From: Macrostomum lignano
Lineage: Eukaryota
Assembly (NCBI GenBank): GCA_002269645.1
Contig: NIVC01002942.1
Location: 1 to 64,000 of the forward strand
Length of the DNA stretch: 64,000 nt
Reading direction: 5' to 3'
Below, one piece after another: positions 1 through 16,300 of this stretch. The translations under genes were made by a program, and so were the position numbers. Numbering within the stretch: the first letter of the stretch is position 1; each line of letters starts with the position of its first letter. Below the pieces are notes generated by a model that saw only the letters and a program-made list of their open reading frames with translations, was not told the DNA's origin and did not search any database.

Positions 1-1820
1 CCACAGTTAGTAATTTTATTGATGCATTGTTCAAGACACCACTTACTTCTTGACTGATAACCAACCTCTTTTATTAATTTGTGCTAGGGCTGGTTGTGGC
101 CTGTCTATTCTTATTGGTAAATTCAAAACATCAGGACTCAGTGGTGCTGCATAATCAGACCCTAGAGTTCTAAGAAGTAGGTTGTCCTCAACTCCCTTGC
201 CATTTCCACCAGCGCCATCAAACATTATAAAGTTTTCAACATTCTTACCCATTAGAGCTGTGGCTATAACGGATTCCCAACTTTTTCTATTTTCTGGATC
301 GGGATGAATTTGGTTATGCAGATTAACAATGAAGCCATAGTCGTAATCACTCACTCCAAGTACATCCGAGTAATTATATCCCACCGATTTAGTAACGTAA
401 TCGTCATATCTATACTCGCGAAACTCACCTGTAAGGAGGTCGTATACTCCATCGTTAAACCCTAGCAAATTCCATTTCATGTCGAATTCAATTTCATTGT
501 TAGTAAACCTCTCTTTGAACAAAGTAGTTACCTGTTTGAGTTTGTTGGCTCCTTGTATTGAATTTATATTCTTTATTGTACTCTGTAGTTTCTTTTCAAG
601 TGCTTTTAACTTCTCTTTATCATCAGCCGCCTTCTTAATTGCAATTTCGAGTCTAGTCTTTCGGTGGTTTAACTCACTGCTGACAAGTGTGATATTTTAA
701 GAAATATGTCATTTATACTACTTAGTTCTCTCCACTTATCATCATCAAAATAGTAAATACCATCGCTATTGTAAATTATATTATTCTTCTTATATTCATA
801 AACAAAGTTGGTTATATTAACGTCAGTGAAATTATCATCAAGAACTCAATCCTACCATAATAATCATATTTGCTTTTCCATTCCTTATATTTTTATAGTT
901 TTCTTCACTTGCCCATTTCTTAGTACCGATAGTAAGTCTGTCCTGTGCATCAGCAGAGCTGGTACTGGTGCTATTCCACACCTTTTTACATGATTCGGAA
1001 TCGAACTTATCATAATTTACTTTTGACCAATCAGTGAATACTTTGTACATTTCATCACCACTGTCTATGTCGCGGAGTATAAGTGCTACCTTGTACCAAG
1101 AATCATAGTCTTGGTTTTTGTGTTGTATTATACTTAACAACTTTGAAGCTCCTTCACAAGTGGGTGTGGAACGGTGCTTTTTAGTGCCTGTTTATCGGGT
1201 TCTTGTTTTCTTTTTTATCCTGTGGCTTTATTAATCTATTTATCTCATCAAGAATTACATCTCGCATGTCTATTAAACATTTGGACTTTGTACGTTTGTA
1301 TTCCTAATTTCACCATCGACATAATAGAAACCTGGTGGAGCAAATACTAAGGCGGGAATATCAAAACCCACACTTTGTTGAATCGTTACTTTCAATCCAT
1401 CTACTTTGTTAAAGTAAAAGTGGTGTCCCTTGTTTGTCTGAACAACCCAATCACAATGAGTCATACACAGTTCATTCAACTCAGGGCATAGGTCAGCATT
1501 ATCAATATCGATTACGGTTATATTTGAGTTTCTAGTATCTATCCAAATCATGTTGTCTACATCTGGTCGAAATGGTGGTGAGGTTGAATTCCTATCTGCT
1601 TTGTTGGCATTCCTGATGGTATTTTTTTCTTTGTTTTACTATTCCATGTTACACTGCAACTTCCGAATCTAAAATTAAGTTCTTCATAGAGATTAATTAG
1701 TTTATCGTACGATTTTGTTTGTTTTAAATTTGTCAATCTTGGTGGTGGGACATCATGTTTTGAAGCGGATCCTGTACGATCACAGGAGAGAAACTTGAAT
1801 CGTTTTGATTTTTTCTTTCC
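1..1820 (-). pseudogene. Prim-pol + PriCT-2 + D5-like SF3 helicase, broken by several frameshifts; runs off the left edge
   Basis: 1273-1551: TVIDID...QTNKGHHFYF (AEP prim-pol motifs). 838-1140: YDSWYKVALIL...FTDWS...W (PriCT-2). 43-522: LLGFNDGVYDL...DYVTKSVGYNY (D5-N) and Walker A GAGGNGKG. Confidence 0.85.
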
Positions 1821-2654
1821 ATTTTATTTAAAATAAATTTAACAATATAATTCATCAGTTTCAATGTACTTCTCAAGGGTTATGGGGAGTTTGAAAATGT
1901 TCAACTTAAGCATGACGAAAAATTCATCATTCCTTATGTGCTGTCTCGAAATCAATGCCCATTTATCAACATGTGCAAGATATACTCTGAATGAATACAA
2001 ATATGGGGGCATTTACAATCGCTGTGTTTTAATATTTCTGCTTTATATTCATCGTAAGCTTTATCAATTTCTTCAATTAGTCGAGCCTTTCGAGTGGTGT
2101 TTTTATTTGAGAGAAATTTATAATAGAATCATAATACTTTTGTGGCAGTGCATTTCGTACATTTGGGTTAGCTTCCATTTTTCTATGAAAAATTTAACAT
2201 TTTTGCTTTCTTTTGGGCAAATTTCTATAGATAATCCAACTTTAGCATTTTCTGTGTATCATTATACTTTGTCTTCTTAAATTTTCGCTACTTTTGCGCC
2301 TACTTCATTGGCAGCTTTTTTATTATTGACTGCCTTTGCGATTCCGGCAGCACCTGCCTGTCTTATGAGAGGTAGATTGTCTTTTAGTAAGTTGGAATGG
2401 TGCTTCTAGTATCAAAATACCTTCTCCATTGTACTCTAGGGCTCACCTATTGTATACTCTCTTAGCTTGCGTGGATCTGTAACGGGGCACATTTTTGTCT
2501 ATTTTTAGAAACAGAAAAATAAACACAGGAACAGAAAGACTTTCAGACACCAAAGGCCAAACTCCATTGGGCTAAATGTGGCCTGCTCAAAGCGATGATA
2601 TATTTGTTTAAATTATTACCTTAATAAATGTTTGATATCAAGTCATGTTGATAA

Positions 2655-2924
2655 TTATGGCGCATTAGATGGTTCTATATCAGCGCGGCATGTTGGGCAC
2701 CTAACCATGTTGCCCTCTTGAATTCCGGTGCGATAACATATTTCACAAACCACAGCTCGACAACATGCCATGGTAACGTTTGGTGGCCGTGGTTCGTGTT
2801 GGCAGATTGGACAAAGCCCTTGATTATTCCCCGGCTGAGCTGGATGGTTCTGTACTTGAGTCGGGTTATCCTCTGGTTGAATATCAGCTAGTTGGTGCTC
2901 CATATCTTGGCGATAAGCAACCAA
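2655..2924 (-). CDS. RING-finger protein (putative E3 ligase); may join the 3040-3231 ORF through frameshifts
   Basis: CPIC-x9-CC-x4-CxxC-x11-CPTCR RING-like pattern. Confidence 0.7.
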   Translation of the reverse strand: MVAYRQDMEHQLADIQPEDNPTQVQNHPAQPGNNQGLCPICQHEPRPPNVTMACCRAVVCEICYRTGIQEGNMVRCPTCRADIEPSNAP

Positions 2925-3338
2925 GCGCCTCTCTGCTTCTTGAACGCGACGTTTTTGAAGATAGTAGTTCTAGGAAAGGGTTTGGTGCGCTCGTATATGA
3001 TTTTTGTAAACTTAAAACCTTATAATGTAAAAACACTTTTTAACTAACCTTTAGCTGATTAAAGAAGCGCTCTTCATTAGCCAAATTTTGTGGGTTATAC
3101 TCCAAAAAGATGTTGATGGCAATATCTCTAAACATTGAGTTCCTATGGTGTTGTCGCAAATTTCGCTCACGAATTCTAAGAGTTGCTCTAGCGGCAGTAA
3201 GCCTCTCGTGCAAATTCGAGAAAGAAGGCATTGTAGGAATGATATTTGTAAGAAGGTAAAGTTAGTAGAGAAAAATTACTAGACCTTGCCGCTCGTGGCC
3301 ATTCATTTATATATTTTTATGACAAAACGTCAGACCCC

Positions 3339-3439
3339 GCATTCCATTCAGACCAAAACACGAGACCAATTTTTATCTTTTTATTTTTCGAAATTTTCTT
3401 CTCGCGTTTTGGTCTCGCGTTTTGGTCTGAATGGAATGC
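3339..3439. repeat. 31-bp inverted repeat with a 39-nt AT-rich spacer
   Basis: GCATTCCATTCAGACCAAAACACGAGACCAA (3339-3369) pairs with TTGGTCTCGCGTTTTGGTCTGAATGGAATGC (3409-3439), 1 mismatch. Confidence 0.9.
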
Positions 3440-3444
3440 ATGAC

Positions 3445-3930
3445 TCAGTGTAGCAAGAGTATAAGATAAAAAATATAAAACCCCGAATTCCTGTGTTAGT
3501 CATCGAGTGAAGTTTGCCTACTTGCTTTGCTATCTTGGTCGGACAATAGCCGACCATATTGTTGCGGTGCGAGCTTGCTTCTGTGTAGCAAGAGTAGATG
3601 AAAAATATAAAACCCCGAATTCCTGTGTTAGTCATCGAGTGAAGTTTGCCTACTTGCTTTACTATCTTGGTCGGACAATAGCCGACCATATTGTTGCGGT
3701 GCGAGCTTGCTTCTGTGTAGCAAGAGTATAAGATAAAAAATATACAACCCCGAATTCCTGCGTTACTCATTGAGTAAAGTTTGCCTACTTGCTTTGCTAC
3801 GGTGGTTGGACAATAGCCGACCATATTATTGCTCTGCGAGATTGCTTCTGTGTGTAGCAAAAGTAGATGAAAAATATACAACCCCGAATTCCTGCGTTAG
3901 TCACTGAGTGAAGTTTGCCTACTTGCCAGC
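3445..3930. repeat. Tandem repeat of 132-135 bp, about 3.5 copies, inside the element
   Basis: CCCCGAATTCC recurs at 3481, 3613, 3748 and 3882; units carry the hairpin GGTCGG-N7-CCGACC. Confidence 0.9.
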
Positions 3931-4021
3931 TTCCTAAGATAGTAATTTTTTGTTTATTGACCCCGTTGGGAGTTTTTGTACTTATGTTGTGTTTTTATGG
4001 TGACTATGGTATTATGTCTAA

Positions 4022-5399
4022 TTATGTGACAATTATGTCTAAAATCGGATAAAGTTGAAAGCCTGAAACAATAAGAACAGTTGATCCTTCAGTGGCTGAA
4101 TTAATATGCACTCTATAACCGGAGAATTTTTCGGTGGAAGCTACTTCAAAATATTTCATCACTCCAGGAACTAAACCAGCATTTTCGGTAGAAAAAATAT
4201 TCCTAAAGTCTCTCTTGTTATTGCTCCCTTTCAGAATAAAACTTTTTGGTTGATTTTTTATAATTTCACTACCTACTGCTTTGGTTCCTTTCAATCCGAA
4301 TTTCCAAATTTGAATAGATTCAGGAAGTTGTACTTCAATGTAAGAATTGGGTTCATTCCTCGATGCCCATTCTGAATTAGATACTATATAACCCCAATTA
4401 TCTGACGTTTCAAATGCTCCTGATGACGCTACATTGAAACCCCTTTCTCTATAGTTTTGACGTGTTGCTAGTGAGGGAATATATCCTGTATAAGATTTGA
4501 AACCTAGTCCCCGCCTTAGTCGCAGCTCCACTGATTCAAGTGCATTGTCTACGTATAGCTTTGGTACAGCTTGAAGTCTATCTATAGGCCACACTAAATC
4601 ATTAACCACTGTTTGTCTCTCAAGTAATTCAACTTTTGTAAGCTTTACGGAACCAGAAAAATTAAGAGAATAATGGAAATAATATGAGGGTTTGGGTATT
4701 TTTTTCCTAAGATGTGCATTGCCCCTTCGTAGTTCAATGGGTGCACTTTGTTCAACAGGTGTCCAGTTTGTTCCATTTAGGCTCACACTAACAGACCAAC
4801 CAGGCCACACCTCTCCTTCCAACTTTATCTCTACAACTTTCCTAGCTCTTTTCAAAATTGAAATCGTATCCACTTGTCTGAGTCATCTGCACTGCTCCAT
4901 TCTGAAGCGGGTTTGAATCTGCAACATGATATGCTGCTGAAGAGTTATGAGAAGCGGTCACTTTCATGTCAGGATGGGAAGCGTTTGAAGTCAGTAATGA
5001 AAGAATATTGACTAATTTCGAACTCTCTGTACCTCCCGCAGTACCTTGCCTTTCTGCTAACAAAGTGTCAATCTCAGTTTTAGAATACATCTTAGTGTCA
5101 ATTTCGGTTTTAGAATACATCTTAGTGTCAGTTTCGGTTTTTGTGTAGACATTGTTTACGCGCCCATGAGCATCGTCAATTAATTGTAGCATGGTGATAT
5201 TCATTGCGTCACTATCTTCCTTTGAATAAGAGTCTGAAACATTTCTCTTTGCTAACAATAAATTATCTATTTCCTCTCTCTTATATCCTTCATTTTCATT
5301 GATGTATCGATCATCAGCTAACGCTATTGTTATTCCAGGTGCTATATCATTTGAATTTGACGAGTAACCAAATTGATTAGCAGTATTCTTGTAACTCAT
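4022..5399 (-). CDS. Fibre-like / receptor-binding protein with YSKTEID repeats and F5/8C (discoidin)-like domains; frameshifted near 4860-4920
   Basis: YTKTETDTKM/YSKTEIDTKM/YSKTEIDTLL stalk repeats. C-terminal SEWAS...YIEVQLP...IWKFGLKG...PKSFILKGSNN...YRVHI. A second discoidin start (SEWSSADDSDKWIRFQF) is present in another frame. Confidence 0.6.
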
Positions 5400-5827
5400 T
5401 TTAATTGCTGCAAAATTTCATTATAGCTATCTCCTTTATCGATTCGATGTAAAAAGTACAGCGACATTTGACCACAAAATTTCTTATCTAAAGTTTGAAT
5501 TTGTTCTTCCATGTCTCCACATATTCTATTCTTTGTGTGATTAAACTTTTCCATAATTTCCAGTGTGGGCGGTAGTGCATAGGAATCAAAAAAATAAACC
5601 TTATCATGAGCTGAAAAGATAGCTGAATGATGTATACCCCGTTCTTTCGAAGTGTGAATATTTGTCATAAAGTAACCATACTGTGGTAAATCAACAATTT
5701 CATCTCTCATGGCATAGCGAAATGGTTTTAACTTGAGATATTTTGCCCAATTTATCAGATCAATATTAGTCGTAGTGTCAGTCCCAAACTTTTGTTTAAA
5801 TGCATTCCATGTCTCAGCTTCGCTCAT
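5396..5827 (-). CDS. Adenain-like (Ulp1-fold) cysteine maturation protease
   Basis: GIHHSAI...YFFDSYALPP...QIQ...FCGQMSLYFL (His, Asp, Gln, Cys); ATG at 5827 in TAAAAATG context. Confidence 0.88.
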   Translation of the reverse strand: MSEAETWNAFKQKFGTDTTTNIDLINWAKYLKLKPFRYAMRDEIVDLPQYGYFMTNIHTSKERGIHHSAIFSAHDKVYFFDSYALPPTLEIMEKFNHTKNRICGDMEEQIQTLDKKFCGQMSLYFLHRIDKGDSYNEILQQLK

Positions 5828-5836
5828 TTTTAACAC

Positions 5837-6627
5837 TCATATTTGTCGTACGTGTAGATTTATAAATATTTCCTCGCCATCAAAGTCGTATAGAACACCA
5901 GACTCATCTTCGATGACAAAGTCGAATGTGCTCAACATGTTTGTAGTTAGTGGTAGGTACACAGGATTTGCAGGCTCTTGAATAATTTTACTTCCCATTG
6001 GGACAGAGAACGATGGAATTGAAAGAAGTATTTGCTTATCAATTAAATGATTTCCATTGGCTGGATCAGTGATAAAACCCCCTTTGATATTGAGACAACG
6101 AACCATGATCGCACTTCTAGCTCCGTCTATCCGAGCTGGATTTGGAGCTCTCTCAAATGGTTTCAAATACACTTCCGAATTGAATCCCAACAGTCTTCTA
6201 AAGTTATTGGAATGTGCATCCCTGAAATCAACTTGATACTCTGTGGCTAACCGTAACTCAACCCTACGCGTGTCTAGGCTTGCACTGAAAACAATAGCCC
6301 CTCTTTCCAATCATTTGCAGCTGTTAGCAATCTTTGAATCTCGCTTGACAGACTTTTAACTTCCCAAGATCCTGCTTGAATCTTTATTTTCTTCCATGTT
6401 CTACCACTATCCCTCGAGTATCGCAACTCATTATTGCCTCCTTCAATATTGTTAATAGCATCAAAGACTGCAAACTTTTTTATACCAGCTTCGTATTCTC
6501 GATCTTCATACAAATTTATCGGAGTGCCTAGAGTTTGTCGAAATGGGTTTTTAATTGAAAAGAAGTCAAATGTGCGTTGAAACTTTTTACTCAAGAGGAT
6601 GTTGACTTTTTCTATTTCTTTTTCCAT
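5837..6627 (-). CDS. Minor capsid protein (penton), one frameshift near 6290-6300
   Basis: Joining the 6274-6627 and 5837-6310 ORFs gives INNI..GNNELRY...IKIQAGSWEV...YQVDF...RLLGF...EPANPVYLP...FDGE, typical of Polinton pentons; lies next to the protease and ATPase. Confidence 0.8.
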
Positions 6628-6629
6628 TT

Positions 6630-7359
6630 TTAAGCAAGTAATTCTACTAGCTCTTTATCAACATTGTTATGTCCCTCTGCTTTTGCGGCTAGTAATGTCA
6701 ACACTCTTTCACTGAGTCCAGATCCCGGTTTTACTCGATATCCTGGTGGATTATCTTTCAATATCCTTACTGCTTGCTTATAATTCCCACTTGATTTGGC
6801 CGCTGGATTTTTACAGTGTTCAATGAGGTTAACATAATCCTGCAATGTTTGCATCTTGAATTGCTTCAGCTCTTCACCATTTTCAGTTACTTTAGGCATT
6901 TTGAACAACTCTTCAAGATCTTCAGAAAATGGCATTCGGAATTCGTTGACAATGATGTCCGACCTTGTTCATGGAATTCAACCTCTATTACAGATGATCC
7001 AAATATATATCCAGCATCAGTTTTTTGAATCCGTATACTAGGCGCTGGTCTTTGAGTTATTGGAATCTTTCCAATTTCTTCAATTATTTTGTCAAATACT
7101 TCCAGAGGTTCAAATCGTCCTTTTGGTGTACTTAATTGCGGAACTGGAACTTTTTGATTCTGAAGTTTATCAACAAGGTTGGCATTGAATCAATAAATTC
7201 ATCAAGCTTTTCTGTGACAGGTTTTTGAGCTAATGGAGCCACTCTTGCATATAAACTCTCTTCTCCAATTTTCAAATAGCGTTGAGCATCATTTCTGGAT
7301 TTGTACGTTTCTCGCTGCTTTGCTAAATTAATGAGTTCTCTTATATATTCATTAGTCAT
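6630..7359 (-). CDS. Conserved Polinton hypothetical protein, probably one ORF split by frameshifts
   Basis: Contiguous coding segments in shifting frames between ATPase and penton; FSEDLEELF...YVNLI...KPGSGL segment. Confidence 0.45.
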
Positions 7360-7361
7360 TT

Positions 7362-8135
7362 TTACAATGGGATTTTAGTTAGAACATCCTTATACAAATC
7401 TTGCTCATCCTCATCAGCTCTTGTATTTATATAGATATAGCCATACTTCTTTTTCCAAGCCTCTCTACATTTAGCCTTGAATATAGCGGGTTCATAATTC
7501 GTTTCTATATTTCTAGCAATGTGATTTAAGTTTGTATCTTTTTGTTTAAAGATTATGTAACATGTCGTATTCTCCCTGACAGTATTGCGATCTAGTTTGG
7601 TAAAATTTTGAGCTAGATAAAAACCACAACAGTTTCCATGCCTGCCTCTCTGAAACAGACTTTCCTGAAATGTTTGATTAGCCTCTCCCAAAACATCGTC
7701 CAATATCACACATGTCTTTAGTCCATTATGAAAAATTTCTTCATTTGGAGTATGGGAAAGAGTGACAGGAATTTTCTCTATTACTTCTGAATTTTCTGAT
7801 GTGCTTTGCACTCGACCAGGGTTGGCTGCCTCTCGACAAATATGTCTAATATCTTCAGGAGATGCATCCTCACTCACCTGGTAGACATGATAGAGTGAGT
7901 TGATAAGAGAAGGTGGGAGACCATTTTCAAAGCCATATTTTAGAAACTGATACTCTGGATCCATTTGAGATGCTCTGGGAACATATAAAACTAACTCATT
8001 AAAGTCAACTAGTTTTTCAGGACTTGTAAGAATATGGAATAGTAAATATGTTTTACCCGTATTTGTAGCGCCGATAATACAACATAAAAGAGGATTAGGG
8101 AAAATAGGATCATGCTGAAATTTTACTTTGGGCAT
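7362..8135 (-). CDS. A32/FtsK-like DNA packaging ATPase
   Basis: Walker A GATNTGKT, Walker B CVILDD, arginine finger RGRH, YLAQ motif; intact 257 aa. Confidence 0.93.
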   Translation of the reverse strand: MPKVKFQHDPIFPNPLLCCIIGATNTGKTYLLFHILTSPEKLVDFNELVLYVPRASQMDPEYQFLKYGFENGLPPSLINSLYHVYQVSEDASPEDIRHICREAANPGRVQSTSENSEVIEKIPVTLSHTPNEEIFHNGLKTCVILDDVLGEANQTFQESLFQRGRHGNCCGFYLAQNFTKLDRNTVRENTTCYIIFKQKDTNLNHIARNIETNYEPAIFKAKCREAWKKKYGYIYINTRADEDEQDLYKDVLTKIPL

Positions 8136-8156
8136 TTAAAAAAAGAAAAAATGACC

Positions 8157-9521
8157 TTATTCGACGCGGGTCATTTGATATTCACTGGTAACTTTTATTA
8201 CATTCTTTGTTTGTTCAAGAATTAGTGCAAAAGCAGTCAGCTCAACATTTGTTGACTTCTTGATAAATAATTGAATATTCACTCCACTCTTGACCAGAAA
8301 CTCATCTTGAGCTGTTAGATCAAAGCAAAAGATTGGATAGATGGTTAGAAAGTCTTGTTTATTGAATGGAGGAGTTACACCGAAACGGCTGCAGATGTCT
8401 TCGTACATTTCATACGCTCTGTGAATGTCTTGAGCTACTGGATCAATTTCAACATAATCATTCGGATACATCACCTGATTTAATCTGACTTGAAGCTGGG
8501 TTATTTTCACTGCATTTGCTCCAGTTTTGTAAGACACATACTTGTGATCATTAACTATATATGATGGGTTGTTTACGTCATATTTGAAAGCTACAAAGAT
8601 TGCAAGTGGCATATTGGAGATGTTGGCTATGTTCCATGTATATGGACTTCCTTGAATGAGTTGTGGTGGAACCGTTACCCTCTCTGGAAATGATACTGTA
8701 ATGTCCTTGTTGAGTGATTTTAGAAAAGCTGCTTCAGCACTGGGTGACAAAGTAATAGCAGGGATCCAAATCTCAAAGCTATTAATAGTTAACTTAGCTT
8801 CCGTCCCGGCAGCTCCAAAGAAAATTTCAGCATCGTTAGTCTTTCTTGTCCATGTGAATTTATATTTAATTCCTTTGCTAATCTTCTGCCAATCAAGGAA
8901 CCCAATGAGAGGTGTTAATGATAGTTTGATTGTTCCACCTCTGTTTGGAGCATTAGTGACATTGTTATAATTTTCAAGCCTCCTAATGTATCCAGTATTC
9001 GAATCCTTCTTATTGAGTCTATTTTTCATAGCGATTGCTGCAGTTCTCACAGCTTCAGCATCTGCGTTGTTTGCTAGAGGTATATCAGAAACAGTCCCAG
9101 CATCTCCAGTGTCTGGAATCCATCCGTATGCTTCTCCAACTTCATTCATTAATTTTGAGTACATTACGGACTTTAAGATTGTGTCATACTCTCCAGGATC
9201 ATTATAGACTTTCTTTGTTCCTCCAATGTCAACTATGAGTTGAGAGAAAAGTCTCATAGGCCAATTATGTTCTAGAGTAATGTTCGTATTCAAGTCGGTG
9301 TTATCTCGTTGTGTTATTGAGTATTTTATACAACCGAATGCCTCTGACATGAGAATGTATGACTCTGTTGAATTGACTTCATGAACTATTTGACCTCCTG
9401 CAACATTGAGATTATTAGTGCTACCTGGAGTTGGAGAAATCTTAATATAGTCTTCTTTCTTTTTGAAAAAGCTAAAAGTTTTGTCCTCATATATGCTCAG
9501 TATATCCTTTTTGTTCTCCAT
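8157..9521 (-). CDS. Major capsid protein (Polinton/adintovirus hexon-like)
   Basis: Intact 454 aa; TNNLNVAGGQI...ITLEHNWPMRLFSQL...PGEYDTIL and C-terminal YPIFCFDLT; position in the morphogenesis block. Confidence 0.85.
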   Translation of the reverse strand: MENKKDILSIYEDKTFSFFKKKEDYIKISPTPGSTNNLNVAGGQIVHEVNSTESYILMSEAFGCIKYSITQRDNTDLNTNITLEHNWPMRLFSQLIVDIGGTKKVYNDPGEYDTILKSVMYSKLMNEVGEAYGWIPDTGDAGTVSDIPLANNADAEAVRTAAIAMKNRLNKKDSNTGYIRRLENYNNVTNAPNRGGTIKLSLTPLIGFLDWQKISKGIKYKFTWTRKTNDAEIFFGAAGTEAKLTINSFEIWIPAITLSPSAEAAFLKSLNKDITVSFPERVTVPPQLIQGSPYTWNIANISNMPLAIFVAFKYDVNNPSYIVNDHKYVSYKTGANAVKITQLQVRLNQVMYPNDYVEIDPVAQDIHRAYEMYEDICSRFGVTPPFNKQDFLTIYPIFCFDLTAQDEFLVKSGVNIQLFIKKSTNVELTAFALILEQTKNVIKVTSEYQMTRVE

Positions 9522-9541
9522 TTTTATAAGAGAAATTTCAA

Positions 9542-9994
9542 CTAAGCTTCATGAGGTCTAAGAATTATCCCATTACCCTGTTTCTCCTTTTCAACTTTAA
9601 ACGTCTTTAGCAGCCACTTGACTGCTTCGCTGGGTACTTGTTCGACTCTTTTAGCCGCATCAACTAATACTCCACTCCCTTGAGCCTTTTTCAACTCTTC
9701 TAGTTTTTGCCGTTCAATGCTTTCTATTGTCTTATTATGTTTAGCATTGTTGGCTGTATTAACACTTTTTGCAATCATTGTACCAACTCCTGAGGCTGCT
9801 CCGATACCACCCAAAATTGCTGGTAGTAAGCCTAATAGAGGAATTATTCCACCTTCATGTTCTTTCTGTTTCTCTTGCAATTCTCGAATCTTCTCTTTAG
9901 AAAGATATTGCTTTTGCTTATTTACAGTAACATATCTTGGTTTTCCCTCTCGAACATATCGATTGAGTCTTGCTTCAGTGTTTTTCTCGCTCAT
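9542..9994 (-). CDS. Small basic virion core/membrane-active protein
   Basis: EGGIIPLLGLLPAILGGIGAASGVGTMIAKSV amphipathic segment followed by a coiled coil and QGSG/QGNG motifs, as in Polinton small structural ORFs. Confidence 0.6.
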   Translation of the reverse strand: MSEKNTEARLNRYVREGKPRYVTVNKQKQYLSKEKIRELQEKQKEHEGGIIPLLGLLPAILGGIGAASGVGTMIAKSVNTANNAKHNKTIESIERQKLEELKKAQGSGVLVDAAKRVEQVPSEAVKWLLKTFKVEKEKQGNGIILRPHEA

Positions 9995-10002
9995 TTTTAA
10001 GG

Positions 10003-10425
10003 TCAGAATTTCTTCAAACCATTGCCTTGTCTCAAAGACACTTGAGACTGTTCTGCTGTTCCTAGAGCCTTTTTAACAATATCTTGAATAGCCTTATTTG
10101 ATTGAGAAGCTATCTGTTGCTCTTCTTCCATTCTTTTCTTTGCTTCTTTATCTCTACGTTTCTTTTTAATATATTCCAGTTCCTCACCTGCTTTAGACAT
10201 GTCACTGTATGATTTCTTCGCATCGAATATGTTCTTCGCTGTGGTAGCTGTTTTACCTATTGCATCAGCTCCACTCACAATTTTACTTCCATGATTTGAT
10301 AAAAAGTTTGTGACACCACTGATCATATCACCAATTCCTTCACCCTCTTTATCAGCTAGTAGTTGTGAATCAGACGTTTCAATCTGACCTTTCGCCCGTT
10401 TGCAGTTTGTTCGATAGGCGCTCAT
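10003..10425 (-). CDS. Small virion core protein
   Basis: EGEGIGDMISG..., lysine-rich C-half, terminal QGNGLKKF; ATG at 10425 in TAAAAATG context. Confidence 0.55.
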   Translation of the reverse strand: MSAYRTNCKRAKGQIETSDSQLLADKEGEGIGDMISGVTNFLSNHGSKIVSGADAIGKTATTAKNIFDAKKSYSDMSKAGEELEYIKKKRRDKEAKKRMEEEQQIASQSNKAIQDIVKKALGTAEQSQVSLRQGNGLKKF

Positions 10426-12616
10426 TTTTAGTTGAAAAATTTGCTGGTAGAAGCTGGGATTTGTAAAATGATCCAATGATTTCTTCTCCATTCTCATCCT
10501 CAATAATGTAGGTTATGGGATTGGAGTAAACTATTTTCTTTATCCTAAACACTTCTGAAATTTTCCAATATCCTCTTCGACCCTTTTCAAAGTGCTCCTT
10601 ATATCTATAGATATGAACTTTGTCACCTACTTTGAAGTTTGGTTTCTCATTTGAATACTCGAAAGTTGGCTTTGGTACTCGCTCAGGATGTTTAGATGCT
10701 TCTGAAGGAGTTATCAGAATCTCAGAATGGATTGTGTTGTTGTATTTTTCAACAATAGCTGGCAATGTGTGGAGCCACTTCTGATTACCCTGTAGATCAA
10801 ATTCAAACCAGAGTTTATTTGTGAGAGTACGATTGAACCTCTCAATCATTGCATTCTTGGACTCGCCATAAATTGAAAACATCTTGTTAATATATTCACC
10901 CTTTCATCCTTCTTTCTAATGTTGTCTTTTGAAAACGAGTATAGCTTGTACATATGCTGATTATAAAACTCCTTGCCTTCATCTACACAAAGTCTCTCTG
11001 ATCGTCTTCCTGATTCCTTAAATACTTTTTGGAAAGCTTCTGCAACTTCCGCTCCCGTCTTTGTTTTCAAAGGAACTGCCCAGGCGTAACGTGTAAAACC
11101 ATCTATGATAGTTAGAGCATATTTGTAACCTCTTTCGGGCGGTAGGATAATGATATCTGCATGCCAAATTGTGTCTTTTGCATAGTGAATCATTTTTCTA
11201 AATACTCTTGGCTTTCGATATTCTTTATGCAATTTTACTGCATCTTCATAGCTAAGACCCTTACCATAAATTGTTAGACAGTCAATACAATTGTTGGGGT
11301 TGTGAGTATGAATGCCTAATCCAAACCGAACTTTAGCCTTGATAATACGCTTTACTAGATTTCGAATGAGTCTCTCTTTCACAGACAAGTCACTGGTTGG
11401 AATAGCATCTAAATCAGCTATCATTTTTTCATCAGCTATATGCTTCTTTGCTAGAGCTTCCTCTGGATTTGAAGAAGTGTTTTCAGCATCTCTATAGTTT
11501 TTGTCATGATAGTAAGCAGTCCAATCGATTGGGTTAATTGGTAGACTGTCATACCGAGGCCGGTCTGTAATTGGATTGAGTCTCTTGTCTAAATTTGTAC
11601 CCGGCAGTTGTTCCTCAATCTTTCGAAAGAGGCTGGACTTTATCTTAAGGCTTCATCAGGATTGACCAGATCCTTCAGCCCCACCCCCATTAAGTCTCTG
11701 AACCTTCTCCATATCCTTGTCAACTTCGTTCGGACTTAGGAGCTTGGCTGCGGATTTCCACCATGTCCTCAAGCTTGTTACCATCGAACCATAGGTTCGC
11801 GGACGAAGTCCGATTGGGAACAGGAATTACCTGTGTTCCTTCAGAAGATTTCTCAACTGAAGTGGTACTTGAGGCTGTTATTGACGTACTAGAATCGGAC
11901 GGAGTTCCCGCAATTTGAAGGTGTCGCCAATCACTAAGCACTTGTTTAATGTTGGTTATAATGTTTTTGTATTGATCACCATAAAGAAATTTCAATGCAA
12001 ATTCTCCTGTTATAAGGGTGATTCCATTGTCTAGTAAAATATTCTTAGGTTCCTTTGTAGTTCTATTGATGCATACATAATACAACTGATAGGTGGGATA
12101 AGAATTTTTATAGTCTAATAGTTTCTGATAATTCCTTTCACGACTTGATGAATTGTCCGTGTTATCAGAAGATTTAAGCTCTAATGCAATCTTTCGCTCA
12201 ACGTGAACCAGGTCTATCTTTTTTACCTTCTCGAATCCAAAATAATTTTCTGCTAATATTTCATATAGTCTGCCTAGTCTCATTTGAATAACTTTAATCT
12301 TGTGTGAAATTATTAACTCTTCTTGGAAAAGATCATGAAGAATTTGATCATGCCCAACCTTATCATCAATTGGTTTCAGAAGAATTTCTCGAATTGTTTG
12401 CTCCATTTTTACTATAGAAACTTTAACAAGTGCTTATTTGATGACTAGCAAGGACATTGACTTCCTCACTCAGGCCACTACGTAACCTGCAAAAGAATAC
12501 CCTGGAATATGAAGTTCTCCTGGGTATTTTCCAGTGGCGAAGATGGGTGGTAGTTTTGTTATAGCTGACTGAATATCTAAAGCATTTCCTAGAAATAATG
12601 GTTTACTGAAGGCCAT
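10379..12616 (-). CDS. Parvovirus-type PLA2 domain fused to a retroviral-like (rve) integrase; exon 1 12616-12485, exon 2 from 11604; one frameshift near 10860-10880
   Basis: Exon 1 is 44 codons ending ELHIPGYSFAG. Exon 2 continues PGTNLDKRL...NPIDWTAYYHDKNY (PLA2 motifs) in frame with the 10846-11424 ORF. The DDE triad is WHAD / LCVDEGKEF / IERFNRTL, and the C-terminus is YIIED..GEEIIGSFY. Confidence 0.9.
11605..12484 (-). ncRNA. Group I self-splicing intron (IC1-like core), 880 nt
   Basis: 5' exon ends in U, which pairs with G of the IGS (CAGGU/GCCUG, 12471-12475); the intron ends in omega-G. P AAAUUGCGGGAA (11905-11916), Q AAUCCGCAGC (11747-11756), R GUUCAGAGACUU (11692-11703), S AAGAUAAAGUCC (11635-11646). 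P3 CACCUUC/GGGGGUG, P7 GACUU/AAGUC, P5a A-rich bulge GGUAACAAGCU, and a P9 hairpin. Removal restores the conserved FAGPGT. Confidence 0.95.
11720..12406 (-). CDS. Intron-encoded PD-(D/E)xK endonuclease, Eco47II-restriction-enzyme-like (putative homing endonuclease)
   Basis: Intact 228-aa ORF starting between P1 and P3. QMRLGRLYE...KIDLV...IALELKSSDNTDNSSSR..YQKL resembles the Eco47II-family Q..IG...D...E.K...NT.NS.S pattern (recognised from memory, no search run). The last ~70 codons overlap the ribozyme core. Confidence 0.72.
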   Translation of the reverse strand: MEQTIREILLKPIDDKVGHDQILHDLFQEELIISHKIKVIQMRLGRLYEILAENYFGFEKVKKIDLVHVERKIALELKSSDNTDNSSSRERNYQKLLDYKNSYPTYQLYYVCINRTTKEPKNILLDNGITLITGEFALKFLYGDQYKNIITNIKQVLSDWRHLQIAGTPSDSSTSITASSTTSVEKSSEGTQVIPVPNRTSSANLWFDGNKLEDMVEIRSQAPKSERS

Positions 12617-13030
12617 TTTATATATATAAAATTTACTATCGTTGAATTGGATGACACTTTCATATTGTATATACCTGAAATTGCATTAAATTGACCCGTG
12701 AATCCAACTTTTCTCATGGTTTTAGAGCTGGAATCGTGAAAATTGCACTTTTTAAAAAAATTAGAAAATCACAAAAAATCGCTGTTTTCAGACCATTTTC
12801 ACCTGTTTTTAGTCATTTTTCACTTATTTTTAGTGATTTTCAAAATGAGTGAGGGCATGAGGGCGAGGGCACCCCCCCTTTTTAAAAGTATAAAAATTCC
12901 GGAAAATCTGTGTTCGGTGAAATATTCCACAGGCCAATGCCCCCCACATGCCCTCACCCTCAACACCCTCACTCACAGATATATGTATATTTACATATCA
13001 CACACCCACTTGAATCCATGACCTCCTGGT

Positions 13031-13130
13031 AGTAGTAGTATGTTATAAGGGGCTGAGTCATCCAGCGAGCTGGCGCGCAATGCGCCCGAGCAATTAAGTG
13101 TGGCGCAGCCCCTTATAACATACTACTACT
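13031..13130. repeat. 100-bp unit bounded by perfect 25-bp inverted repeats; probable element terminus
   Basis: AGTAGTAGTATGTTATAAGGGGCTG (13031-13055) and its exact reverse complement (13106-13130); flanks CCTGGT and CCCATT are not a TSD. Confidence 0.8.
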
Positions 13131-13322
13131 CCCATTCCCAATACCCCATCGCTAATACCCCTTGTCTCAGCCCGCAGCCGGCTCCGGTTTGTGCCCCTTT
13201 TCAGTTCTCTCTCTTTCCTTTCTCCTTCTCTCCCATCTCTCCCATATCTCCCATATCTCCCATCATACATTGCCCAAGTCAATCTCGACCGCTATCCAAT
13301 TCAACCCGAACTCCCTTTCCAG

Positions 13323-16300
13323 CCTCTCTGTCTACGTGGTGGATCTGATGCAGTTCATCCTGCTGACCTTCGAGAACCACCTCACGATCGTGTTCGGCTG
13401 CATCCTGACGGTGTGGAGCCTGCTCACCACCGAGGCCTGGAAGCGGTATGAGAGCAGCCTGAGCTACCGCTGGGACGTGAATCACCACTACATCGCAGAG
13501 AACCGCCGGCCCGCCTACGTGCTGAGGAAGAGCCGCTGCCAGCCCGTGAGTGGATCTGCGGCAGTGCTCAGCTAATCCCCACAGCAGCTTGTAATCTCAT
13601 TTTCATCCGGCTTTGCAGATATGGTGCACCCAGCAGACCACCAGGCGGAAGTGCATCGGGTTCTACTCCTGCGTGCTGTCCTGCGTGAGCGGCTTGGGCT
13701 GGCTGCTGACTGGCTGCATCACATCGCATCACATCACATCACATCACATCACATCACATCACATCACATCACATCACATCACATCACATCACATCACATC
13801 ACATCACATCGCATCACATCACATCACATCACATCACATCACATCACATCACATCACATCACATCACATCACATCACATCACATCGCATCACATCACATC
13901 ACATTATGTCAAATGACACTAGAACACATCACATCACATCACATCAAATTACATTAGAATACATCACATCAAACCACATTATATAAAGGAAATTAGAATA
14001 CATCGCATCATATCACATCACATCACATTACGTCACAACACATATCACATCAAATGACATTAGAACACATCACTAAACTTCATGTCACATAACATCACAC
14101 CAAATCACATTAAACGATATCAGAACACATCCCACCACACCATAGCACATCACATCAAACCCTATATCGCCAGAGCACAACCGCTTTCTCAACCCACCGC
14201 CAGGTGATTCTGGTGTTTGCCATCACGGTGGGTTTCCAGGTGGCCCGGCTGGTCGGTGACAGGTCCTACTGCACAGCCGAAACCTCCGCCTTCTCCTGCT
14301 TCATTGTCAGCACCGTGCTGCCCATCACCGGCCAGGTCATCGTGATCTCCATTCTGGACTCGGTCAGTCCGGGCTGGGGATGGCGGGACAGAAAAGACCG
14401 AATGAAATTCTCATCTCACAGCAGGCGGATCACTTTGTGCACGCGCCTGACTCTCGCGCCACGAGCCCCGGTTCCATTTGGGGCTGGTGCGCACTAAAAT
14501 TGGCCCAGGGGAATGCCGCACGATTTACACCCGAGCCTCCCAAATCACAGAGAGTGTACATGCCTGACGATTAGAAAGCCAGGGCCACTGTACACCCTGT
14601 TGTGAGCGTGCGCATGAGTGCTTGTCTGCGCACGCCCTAACCAGTATCCACAGAGCAGTACATTACAATACATAAAAGTACATTACAGTGCATTAAAAAA
14701 ATATTACAGTACACTACAGTGCATTACAGTACATTAGACTACATTACAGTACATTATCAGTACATTATATTACACTGCAGTACATTACAGTACATTATCA
14801 GTACATTACAGTACAATACGCTCGTACAGTACATTAAAAACATTACAGTACACTACAGTGCATTACAGTACATTATCACTACATTACAGTACATTATCAC
14901 TACATTACAGTACATTATCACTACATTACAGTACATTATCACTACATTACAGTACACTACAGTGCATTACAGTACATTATCACTACATTACAGTACATTA
15001 TCACTACATTACAGTACATTATCACTACATTACAGTACACTACAGTACATTACAGTACATTACAGTGCATTACAGTACATTACAGTACATTAGAGTGCAT
15101 TGCAGTACATTAGAATACATTACAGTACACTAGAGTACATTATAGTACATTAGATGCAGTGCAGTACATTACAGTACATTATCAGTACATTACAGTACAT
15201 TACAGTACATTAGAGTGCATTGCAGTACATTAGAATACATTACAGTACACTAGAGTACATTACAGTACATTAGAATACATTACAGTACACTAGAGTACAT
15301 TACAGTACATTAGAGTACATTACAGTACATTAGAGTACATTACAGTACATTAGAGTACATTACAGTACATTAGAGTACATTACAGTACATTAGGGTACAT
15401 TACAGTACATTACAGTACAGCACCCGCGCGCTTGTATGTGCTCAGAAGTCAGCAGAATGAGCAGTTACTCCCTCAGCACTGGTTGTGCGGGACAATGTCG
15501 CCGATGCGTTGCGCCAGGGAGCCCGCAGCCCTCATAAGCGAGCATTTGTGTTTATTTTGATCAAAGAGTGAATCGCCTTTTACCTTGCAGCTGTACAGCG
15601 TGCTGGCCAAAGCGGTGACCAACTGGGGTGAGCAGTTTGTCAATTTTTTATCAGGGACGAGTTCGGTTCCAAGGAGGGAATAATACGCTAAGGAGACAGG
15701 AACTTTCCGTTTCTTCGGCGCAAAAGTATCCTGCCGTTAAATATGAATTTCTTCCATATATTATGAATATGAGTTTAGTTTTAAAAAGCAAAAGCGAATA
15801 AACAATCTTTGAACTTTTGCAGAGTGTCACGAGTATCCGACAGACTACGACAACTCATTCGCCATCAAGGCCTTCGCCTTCCGCTTTGCCAACAACTATG
15901 CTCCACTGTTCTATATCGCCTTCGTGCGGCAGGTGAGGCCGGCTGCCGTAATGCCCTCCAGTGCCCACCTTCCAGTGCCCTCCCTCCAGTGCCCTCCCTC
16001 CAGTGCCCTCCCTCCAGTGCCCTCCCTCCAGTGCCCACCTTCCAGTGCCCTCCCTCCAGTGCCCTCCCTCCAGTGCCCTCCCTCCAGTGCCCTCCCTCCA
16101 GTGCCCTCCCTCCAGTGCCCTCCCTCCAGTGCCCTCCCTCCAGTGCCCACCCTCCAGTGCCCTCCTTCCAGTGCCCTCCCTCCAGTGCCCTCCCTCCAGT
16201 GCTCACCCTCCAGTGCCCACCTTCCAGTGCCCTCCCTCCAGTGCCCTCCCTCCAGTGCCCTCCCTCCAGTGCCCACCTTCTAGTGCCCTCCCTCCAGTGC

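Follow-up and report, generated by a model that had tools for sequence, protein, structure and literature searches.

The 64,000 nucleotides analyzed here (hereafter the window) are positions 1 to 64,000, forward strand, of contig NIVC01002942.1 in a genome assembly of the flatworm Macrostomum lignano (GCA_002269645.1). The first 13,130 of them are the visible part of a Polinton-like (Maverick-related) viral element. A group I intron in the integrase gene of this element encodes a protein of the Eco47II family of type II restriction endonucleases, for which GGNCC is the predicted recognition sequence. GGNCC is also the sole pattern missing from the element, and the intron is itself inserted between the GGT and the CC of such a site. 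All of the element's genes are on the minus strand (Table 1). The rve integrase (PF00665), the capsid protein (PF21738) and the packaging ATPase (PF04665) make up the Polinton/Maverick gene set; no protein-primed polymerase was found in the visible element, where the replication gene is a primase-helicase, and we have therefore filed it under the safer name of Polinton-like.

The limits of the element are well marked. Its GC content is 37.1%, versus about 50% in the flanking DNA. Two more contigs of the flatworm assembly, an allelic pair (L057 and L058), carry a second insertion that is 99.5–99.9% identical to the element in the window, and the homology ends exactly at position 13130, which confirms the boundary. 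L057 adds 1.8 kb of element beyond the start of the window, for a total of 14,973 bp. The element is thus seen from one end only, and its distal arm lies outside these 14,973 bp.

Table 1. Features of the Polinton-like element and its adjacent flank (window coordinates)
Feature	Position	Strand	Evidence or remark
Visible part of Polinton-like (Maverick-related) viral element	1..13130	-	Integrated in Macrostomum lignano DNA; no GGNCC
Primase-helicase gene (Prim-Pol, PriCT_2, D5_N)	1..1870	-	Broken in the window copy; continues past the window edge
146-aa open reading frame at the place of the cysteine protease in Polinton-type elements	5396..5836	-	Protease label from position only
A32-like packaging ATPase, intact	7362..8135	-	PF04665, 26.1 bits (cut-off 22.8)
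Double jelly-roll major capsid protein, intact	8157..9521	-	PF21738, E 2e-13
Exon 2: rest of phospholipase-A2-like domain (PGTNLDKRL...HDxxY) and rve integrase	10379..11604	-	Pfam rve, P0066
CC at the start of exon 2, 3' half of the split site	11603..11604	-	
Group I intron, 880 nt, between GGT and CC	11605..12484	-	Rfam RF00028
Intron-encoded Eco47II-family type II restriction endonuclease, 228 aa	11720..12406	-	Pfam PF09553
GGT, closing codon of exon 1, 5' half of the split site	12485..12487	-	
Exon 1 of phospholipase-A2-like/integrase gene, 44 codons, ending ...YSFAG with Gly codon GGT	12485..12616	-	P0066 alignment
Terminal palindrome at the element end, 30-nt arms, 40-nt spacer	13031..13130	.	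Equals L057 6393-6492
First GGNCC (GGCCC)	13508..13512	+	378 bp outside the element

The Intron and Its Endonuclease Gene

The intron was recognized by the Rfam group I model at 11614-11997 (score 88.9 bits, gathering threshold 50, E 6e-22), and its limits were set by comparison with P0066, an intron-less metagenomic homolog of the interrupted gene. Exon 1 is identical to P0066 at 39 of residues 1-44, and exon 2 aligns from its very first residue with residue 45; the match of P0066 to the joined exons fixes both splice sites. The 3' end proposed by Rfam (11614) was rejected in favor of 11605, nine bases further on, because in the intron-less homolog and in all relatives the Gly codon is followed at once by Pro-Gly-Thr. 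In P0066, the phospholipase-A2-like domain (PF08398) spans the junction. The end of the exon, CAGGU, pairs with GCCUG of the intron and leaves a U.G pair at the splice site; in related elements UUAGGU pairs with GCCUAA, a compensatory change. All six introns end with a G. Core strings of the intron are identical in the relatives L002, L003, L004 and L063, and 14 of the 65 predicted core pairs have compensatory changes across five sequences. It was by these identical strings and by covariation that the intron was identified in these four relatives; the Rfam scans (cmscan), which took in L001-L004, left it undetected in all of them at the gathering threshold and in L002-L004 even at E values up to 1. 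The intron is predicted to be self-splicing.

The open reading frame (ORF) of the enzyme lies entirely inside the intron and is intact both in the window and in L057 (no frameshifts, no stops). Its match to PF09553 (RE_Eco47II) reaches 29.5 bits against a gathering cut-off of 25.9 (E 7e-7). Among its homologs, those of giant-virus loci score between 38.7 and 47 and that of the relative L065 scores 37.7, while the copy in L063, at 20.0, is below the cut-off. Fifteen metagenomic homologs with 45–63% identity keep the D-x10-E-x-K motif; in the alignment of 16 sequences E76 and K78 are invariant and D65 is nearly so. An AlphaFold model has residues 1-166 folded, mostly with a confidence score (pLDDT) above 90 (block means 79-98). 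Residues 167-228 are disordered in the model, this tail being a translational read-through into the ribozyme core. The best fold match in the Protein Data Bank (PDB) is EcoO109I (Foldseek E 8e-5, probability 1.0, TM 0.54) at a sequence identity of 13%, and the top matches (EcoO109I, BbvCI and BamHI) are all restriction enzymes. No meaningful hit came from sequence searches of the PDB, whether the query was the enzyme or its profile; the enzyme is not covered by any NCBIfam model, and its gene is unannotated, the exact protein sequence being absent from a collection of 15 billion proteins.

EcoO109I cuts RG^GNCCY (PMC3089450) and homologs of Eco47II have been assigned to GGNCC (PMC10305163). 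On the strength of this family membership and, indirectly, of the pattern of avoidance described below and of the insertion of the intron at GGT|CC, GGNCC is most likely the specificity of the intron-encoded enzyme.

The Absence of GGNCC

An earlier note on this DNA, made by reading the letters by hand, had claimed that GGNCC is absent from positions 1-13130, that about a dozen sites should be expected there at a GC content of 35–38%, and that the host DNA has sites at about 13508, 14240 and 14262. Computation bears this out. There is no GGNCC in positions 1-13507, compared to 108 in the whole window; the sites that follow the first one are at 14242 and 14262, and the density in the flank is about one per 470 bp. 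Markov models of order 0, 1, 2 and 3 predict 15.4, 15.7, 14.5 and 11.3 sites in the element, and the Poisson probability of finding none is 1.5e-7 (order 1) or 1.3e-5 (order 3). None of 300 order-1 and none of 300 order-3 simulations lacked the site, the minima being 6 and 2. The additional sequence from L057 does not alter this picture, with 0 sites in the 14,973 bp where 17.1 are expected (order 1).

The deficit is confined to this one pattern. Among the 136 strand-merged patterns of the form XYNZW, only GGNCC has a zero count; its depletion exceeds that of the runner-up (P = 3e-3) by four orders of magnitude. A bias in the component tetramers GGNC and GNCC, which the earlier note had named as an alternative, is excluded by their ordinary counts: GGAC, GGTC, GGGC, GACC, GTCC and GCCC each occur 14-25 times. 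GGN(x)CC with x = 0, 2, 3 and 4 is found 13, 13, 12 and 16 times, where 13-16 are expected; the first of these is GGCC. CCNGG (18 versus 16 expected) and AGNCT (48 versus 47.8) are equally ordinary, and AGNCC is likewise without deficit. GGWCC and GGSCC are each missing when taken separately. Since every form of GGNCC is avoided whatever bases surround it, and the counts of GGCC, GGN2-4CC and AGNCT are ordinary, a strict 5-bp site is indicated. Chance or base composition is thus a negligible explanation: the element is indeed AT-rich and so should have fewer sites, but against this stand the probabilities, the rank of GGNCC among the 136 patterns and the ordinary GGN(x)CC counts just given, and the depletion stops at the element boundary and is replicated in independent lineages (see below).

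This depletion acts on two levels, that of the proteins and that of codon choice. In 3161 codons there is not a single Gly-Pro dipeptide, versus 7.2 expected, which makes it the most depleted of the 400 dipeptides; the reverse dipeptide, Pro-Gly, occurs 13 times in the same codons. Out-of-frame GGNCC is equally absent, although 4.7 are expected from synonymous-codon shuffling (3 of 500 shuffles reached zero). When codon order was shuffled instead, the expectation was 12.9 and no shuffle out of 500 reached zero.

The Junction in Intron-less Alleles

The intron sits in the Gly-Pro codons of a conserved YxGPG motif of the phospholipase-integrase gene. As Gly is encoded by GGN and Pro by CCN, Gly-Pro always spells GGNCC, and an allele without the intron therefore carries the site with no synonymous escape. 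The N coincides with the wobble position of that Gly codon, so that the target tolerates every synonymous variant. Homologs of the phospholipase-integrase gene are numerous in metagenomes, with more than 1000 at E below 1e-20. The alleles examined conform to this: all 12 that are intron-less have GGNCC at the junction (GGG, GGT or GGA, followed by CC), whereas all six with the intron read GGT|intron...G|CC and have the site split. The earlier note had suggested that the junction would be a unique target in intron-less viruses. It is the only GGNCC in the short intron-less contig L064 and in the 14.7 kb of L065, and in two further intron-less relatives, L061 and L062, it is accompanied by just one other site each.

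Relatives that Carry the Enzyme Gene

Three relatives with the intron are as devoid of GGNCC as the element in the window. There are no sites in 8.5 kb of L004, in 13.2 kb of L063, or in 13.2 kb of the element in L002; the 11 sites of the L002 contig are all in its first 1.3 kb, which we take to be host flank. L063 is particularly informative, as L061 and L062, from the same sample, are 97.5–98.4% identical to it and lack the intron, their homology starting exactly at exon 2. Intron-plus and intron-less genomes thus coexist at 98% identity. The one GGNCC that L061 and L062 have in addition to their junction is a GGTCC in a non-coding terminal region (at 9213 and 2012, respectively), where L063 differs (near 8040). 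These three genomes also have a mild, two-fold deficit of AGNCT and AGNCC. Another nuclease gene, from the PDDEXK_3 family (77 bits), adjoins an AAA ATPase gene in L061 (19733-20116) and L062 (12535-12954).

A different arrangement is found in L065 (1-14722). Its integrase gene is without an intron, and a free-standing Eco47II-family gene, 31% identical to the window enzyme at the protein level, is located at 8138-8722 on the minus strand; no methylase is in view. What is avoided here is the broader pattern RGNCY, with 5 sites observed versus 67, 36 or 19 expected (orders 1, 2 and 3). By subset, AGNCT occurs 2 times versus 35.6 expected, AGNCC/GGNCT 2 versus 26.8, and GGNCC 1 versus 5.0. As RGNCY is avoided in L065 and only GGNCC in the window element, the avoided pattern follows the enzyme variant. 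In the five enzyme-bearing lineages pooled, one GGNCC is observed where 36 (order 1) or 19 (order 3) are expected, and this single copy is the junction site of L065, the one that cannot be removed.

More distant Polinton-type elements without an intact enzyme do not share the depletion; had they done so, this would have told against the earlier note. A distant integrase relative (L005) has 18 GGNCC versus 13.9 expected, and the short intron-less contigs L025 and L026 have 4 and 5 versus 3.7 and 3.2. L059, whose capsid protein is 43% identical, has 10 sites versus 10.0 expected; we rejected it as an enzyme-free control, since it carries a broken gene of the L065 type, and it is instead a case of a broken enzyme with no avoidance. 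In a polymerase-B Polinton (L060), the 2 sites observed versus 6.2 (order 1) or 2.6 (order 3) expected are not a significant depletion, and about twenty elements from coral and other metagenomes have GGNCC counts close to expectation. Searches of IMG/VR for relatives by capsid protein, with the single sequence and with a 12-sequence profile, found none.

The Search for a Methylase

A type II restriction-modification system comprises a cognate methyltransferase; none was found in the visible element or in six related elements. No ORF of at least 70 aa from the element, in the window or in L057, has a methyltransferase domain, tblastn with three C5-methylases gave no match in the window or in any Polinton-like locus, and the Pfam scans and gene tables of L002, L004, L061-L063 and L065 contain no methylase family. 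The earlier note's statement that no methyltransferase was in view therefore stands.

The situation in giant viruses is the reverse. All ten IMG/VR giant-virus contigs with a homologous enzyme (L006-L015, 30–36% identity) have a C5-methylase adjoining it, and all ten keep GGNCC sites. One of them, the GC-rich L015, has 36 sites versus 130 expected despite its methylase.

It is very improbable that the element is protected by a cognate methylase, whether from its distal arm or from the host, and that the absence of sites has nothing to do with self-protection. The visible sequence does end before the left end of the element, which leaves room for such a gene. However, the element has no sites left on which a methylase could act, and with a methylase there would be no selection to remove them, the giant-virus loci that possess one having kept theirs.

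Other Genes and the Flatworm Copies

The capsid protein is 100% identical to a hypothetical protein of M. lignano (BOX15_Mlig029656g2, NCBI PAA48909.1). Twelve capsid homologs (P0016-P0027, 33–100% identity) contain no Gly-Pro, versus about one expected in each, and have 1-2 Pro-Gly each. We did not use this as evidence, as the sequences are not independent; it could be a lineage-wide constraint or merely a shared structure. The 146-aa ORF has no Pfam match. In L065 there is a 160-aa ORF, a possible counterpart, with a weak match to Peptidase_C5 (E 0.005, below the cut-off). A discoidin-domain protein and a RING-finger ORF are also among the genes of the element.

The window copy and that of L057 differ in the integrity of several genes. 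There are no breaks in the restriction-enzyme ORF, the capsid and ATPase genes or the protease-like ORF. The primase-helicase gene, an intact ORF of 574 aa in L057, has nine frameshifting indels and one in-frame indel in the window, and further frameshifting indels are found in genes of 142 aa (one), 243 aa (two), 263 aa (one) and 123 aa (one) and in the discoidin gene (two). One frameshift in the integrase gene, relative to the metagenomic relatives, is common to all three flatworm copies. Nearly all differences between the copies are 1-nt indels (per block, 5 mismatches versus 5-20 gaps); this pattern is typical of long-read assembly error, and several of the genes that look broken may therefore be artefacts. 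Among the relatives, L003 is interrupted by the polyprotein of a long terminal repeat (LTR) retrotransposon (6343-9975) and L059 by a MULE transposase (5099-5842), interruptions which show that such copies sit and decay in eukaryotic genomes.

The arms of the 100-nt terminal palindrome are 93% complementary, and no distal repeat matching it was found within the 15 kb of the L057 element, of which one end is visible. Positions 3448-3926 hold 3.6 tandem copies of a 132-bp unit, adjoining a hairpin with 31-nt arms (about 3339-3439) that has sub-threshold, microRNA-like Rfam matches; this stretch (3339-3926) may be a regulatory or origin region. Directly outside the element are pentanucleotide microsatellites, about 88 copies of (CATCA)n and about 150 of (TACAT)n (13717-14157, 14659-15419).

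Discussion

The best explanation for these observations is, in our view, that the intron bears a GGNCC-specific enzyme that acts without a methylase, and that the purging of sites from the element is its self-protection; we would put the probability of this at somewhat under 0.8. Such self-protection by site avoidance had been proposed in the earlier note, and it is supported by the location of the enzyme in a group I intron, the GGT|CC junction, the lack of a methylase in view and the specificity of the depletion. The following course of events can be envisaged. The intron encodes a small PD-(D/E)XK type II endonuclease of the Eco47II family, most likely cutting GGNCC. The element would have purged all other GGNCC, with Gly-Pro eliminated from its proteins and the out-of-frame sites removed by codon choice; with no GGNCC left, it would be immune to its own enzyme. 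The intron would remove the last unavoidable site and, at the same time, use that very site as its homing target. If an intron-plus element and an intron-less relative infected together, the enzyme would cleave the DNA of the latter at the insertion point, and the intron would spread when the break was repaired from the intron-plus copy. DNA with an ordinary density of sites, whether that of the host or of an unrelated virus, would be cut many times. The activity on GGNCC, the homing and the degradation of foreign DNA are inferred; use of the enzyme as a weapon against host or rival DNA is plausible.

Several points weigh against this interpretation. The activity and the specificity of this particular protein are predictions, its score for PF09553 is only 3.6 bits over the cut-off, and specificity can shift within families of restriction enzymes. 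L065 keeps its junction site beside an apparently intact free-standing enzyme, for which a simple model of self-immunity has no explanation. In each of the AT-rich relatives only 2-5 sites are expected, so that none of them carries much weight alone, and L061 and L062 are too near to L063 to be independent intron-less controls. The methylase search stops short of the element's far end, where such a gene could formally still lie. Finally, the flatworm copies are endogenous, with an integrase that is frameshifted in all three, and the system may no longer be operating in its flatworm host.

This last point can be developed into the view that the flatworm system is a fossil, shaped in an exogenous ancestor and now present as endogenous copies without an active enzyme. 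We regard this as possible but on balance unlikely. The copies occupy at least two loci; besides the common integrase frameshift, several of their other genes differ by frameshifting indels; and expression in the nucleus would expose the host's own DNA to the enzyme at about one site per 470 bp. Against this, the enzyme ORF remains intact in the window and in L057, and the copies are nearly identical, with differences mostly of the kind that long-read assembly error produces. In any case, this view concerns only the present activity of the enzyme and not the origin of the pattern, and it is compatible with protection by site purging.

The main rival for the origin of the pattern is that the avoidance is a defense against an external GGNCC enzyme, for instance one from giant viruses infecting the same cell or from its other inhabitants, and that the element's own enzyme is incidental. 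Polinton-like viruses are thought to face the restriction systems of giant viruses (PMC12220804; bioRxiv 10.64898/2026.06.19.733378). The giant-virus contigs described above do carry the same enzyme family with a methylase, and the intron-less L061 and L062 are also nearly site-free. However, these two genomes are 98% identical to an intron-plus element, which implies that their poverty in sites is inherited, and we know of no giant virus of flatworms. The co-variation with the element's own enzyme gene weakens this rival further: avoidance accompanies the gene in five lineages, its pattern shifts with the enzyme variant, and L059, with its broken gene, is not depleted. We therefore consider an external origin of the avoidance improbable.

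The combination of an intron-borne enzyme and a purged genome can be compared to several known systems. The nearest is I-Ssp6803I, a tetrameric homing endonuclease of the PD-(D/E)XK type from a group I intron in cyanobacteria, which recognizes a 23-bp pseudo-palindrome with loose fidelity (PMC3384342). The two have in common a restriction-enzyme fold, their encoding in a group I intron and a target that spans the insertion site. In contrast to I-Ssp6803I, the enzyme described here belongs to a bona fide type II family, the pattern avoided is a strict 5-bp palindrome, and the carrier is a eukaryotic virus-like element with a genome purged of the site. More generally, the properties of a homing endonuclease are only partly present: the ORF is in an intron, the predicted target spans the insertion site and intron-plus and intron-less genomes coexist, but the avoided motif has 5 bp and not the long (14-40 bp), loosely read target of such enzymes. 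The GGNCC systems of the Eco47II/Sau96I type, including those of the giant viruses L006-L015, share the PF09553 family and the D..ExK motif. Both the bacterial and the giant-virus systems, however, always have a methylase; in the giant-virus loci it is a C5-methylase adjoining the enzyme, and the sites are kept, whereas in the window element no methylase was found, the gene is in an intron and not one site remains. EcoO109I (PDB 1WTD/1WTE), the best structural match, has a site with the same GGNCC core but reads 7 bp; the avoidance of all GGNCC whatever its flanks points to 5 bp here.

Protection by the absence of sites has its own precedents. Phages avoid the sites of their host's enzymes, and PacI is a rare cutter with no known methylase, in a host genome that lacks its sites. 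In the element, by contrast with phage avoidance, the site is that of its own enzyme, it is a frequent 5-bp one, and its removal required the elimination of a dipeptide from the entire proteome. Among eukaryotic viruses, the restriction-modification systems of marseilleviruses and chloroviruses have been proposed to degrade the DNA of competitors (PMC7253447); these are likewise bacterial-type restriction enzymes, but in them the gene next to that of the enzyme always encodes the methylase, and no intron is involved. Group I introns of 309-376 bp, with no identified endonuclease, have been described in genes of Polinton-like viruses of protists (PMC12220804), whereas the intron in the window has 880 nt and a restriction-family enzyme. 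Recent surveys list methylases, and pairs that may be complete restriction-modification systems, but no methylase-free enzyme with site purging; nor did we find any account of a restriction enzyme with a short site that acts from an intron in a eukaryotic virus-like element while the whole genome of that element avoids the site.

A broader scenario can be offered tentatively, with the odds somewhat against it. There may be a clade of Polinton-like viruses that use Eco47II-family enzymes as methylase-free weapons, with purging as their only self-protection. In such a clade the enzyme would have been free-standing at first, as in L065 with its RGNCY pattern, and would later have moved into a group I intron in the Gly-Pro site of the essential YxGPG loop, a move that would have completed self-immunity and made a homing endonuclease of a 5-bp enzyme.

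If protection by site purging is the correct interpretation, a type II enzyme with a short site can serve as an intron homing enzyme, provided that the genome of its carrier has been cleared of that site. Restriction enzymes, homing endonucleases and the avoidance of restriction sites, which are usually treated apart, would be linked in a single element. This would be a clear case of protection by sequence and not by methylation, strong enough to ban Gly-Pro from a proteome. The contrast of GGNCC here with RGNCY in L065 illustrates a more practical aspect: it suggests that one missing palindrome, together with a nuclease gene, is a genomic signature from which the specificity of uncharacterized viral nucleases might be predicted. 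Restriction warfare of the bacterial type would thereby be extended to Polinton-like elements that reach the genomes of animals.

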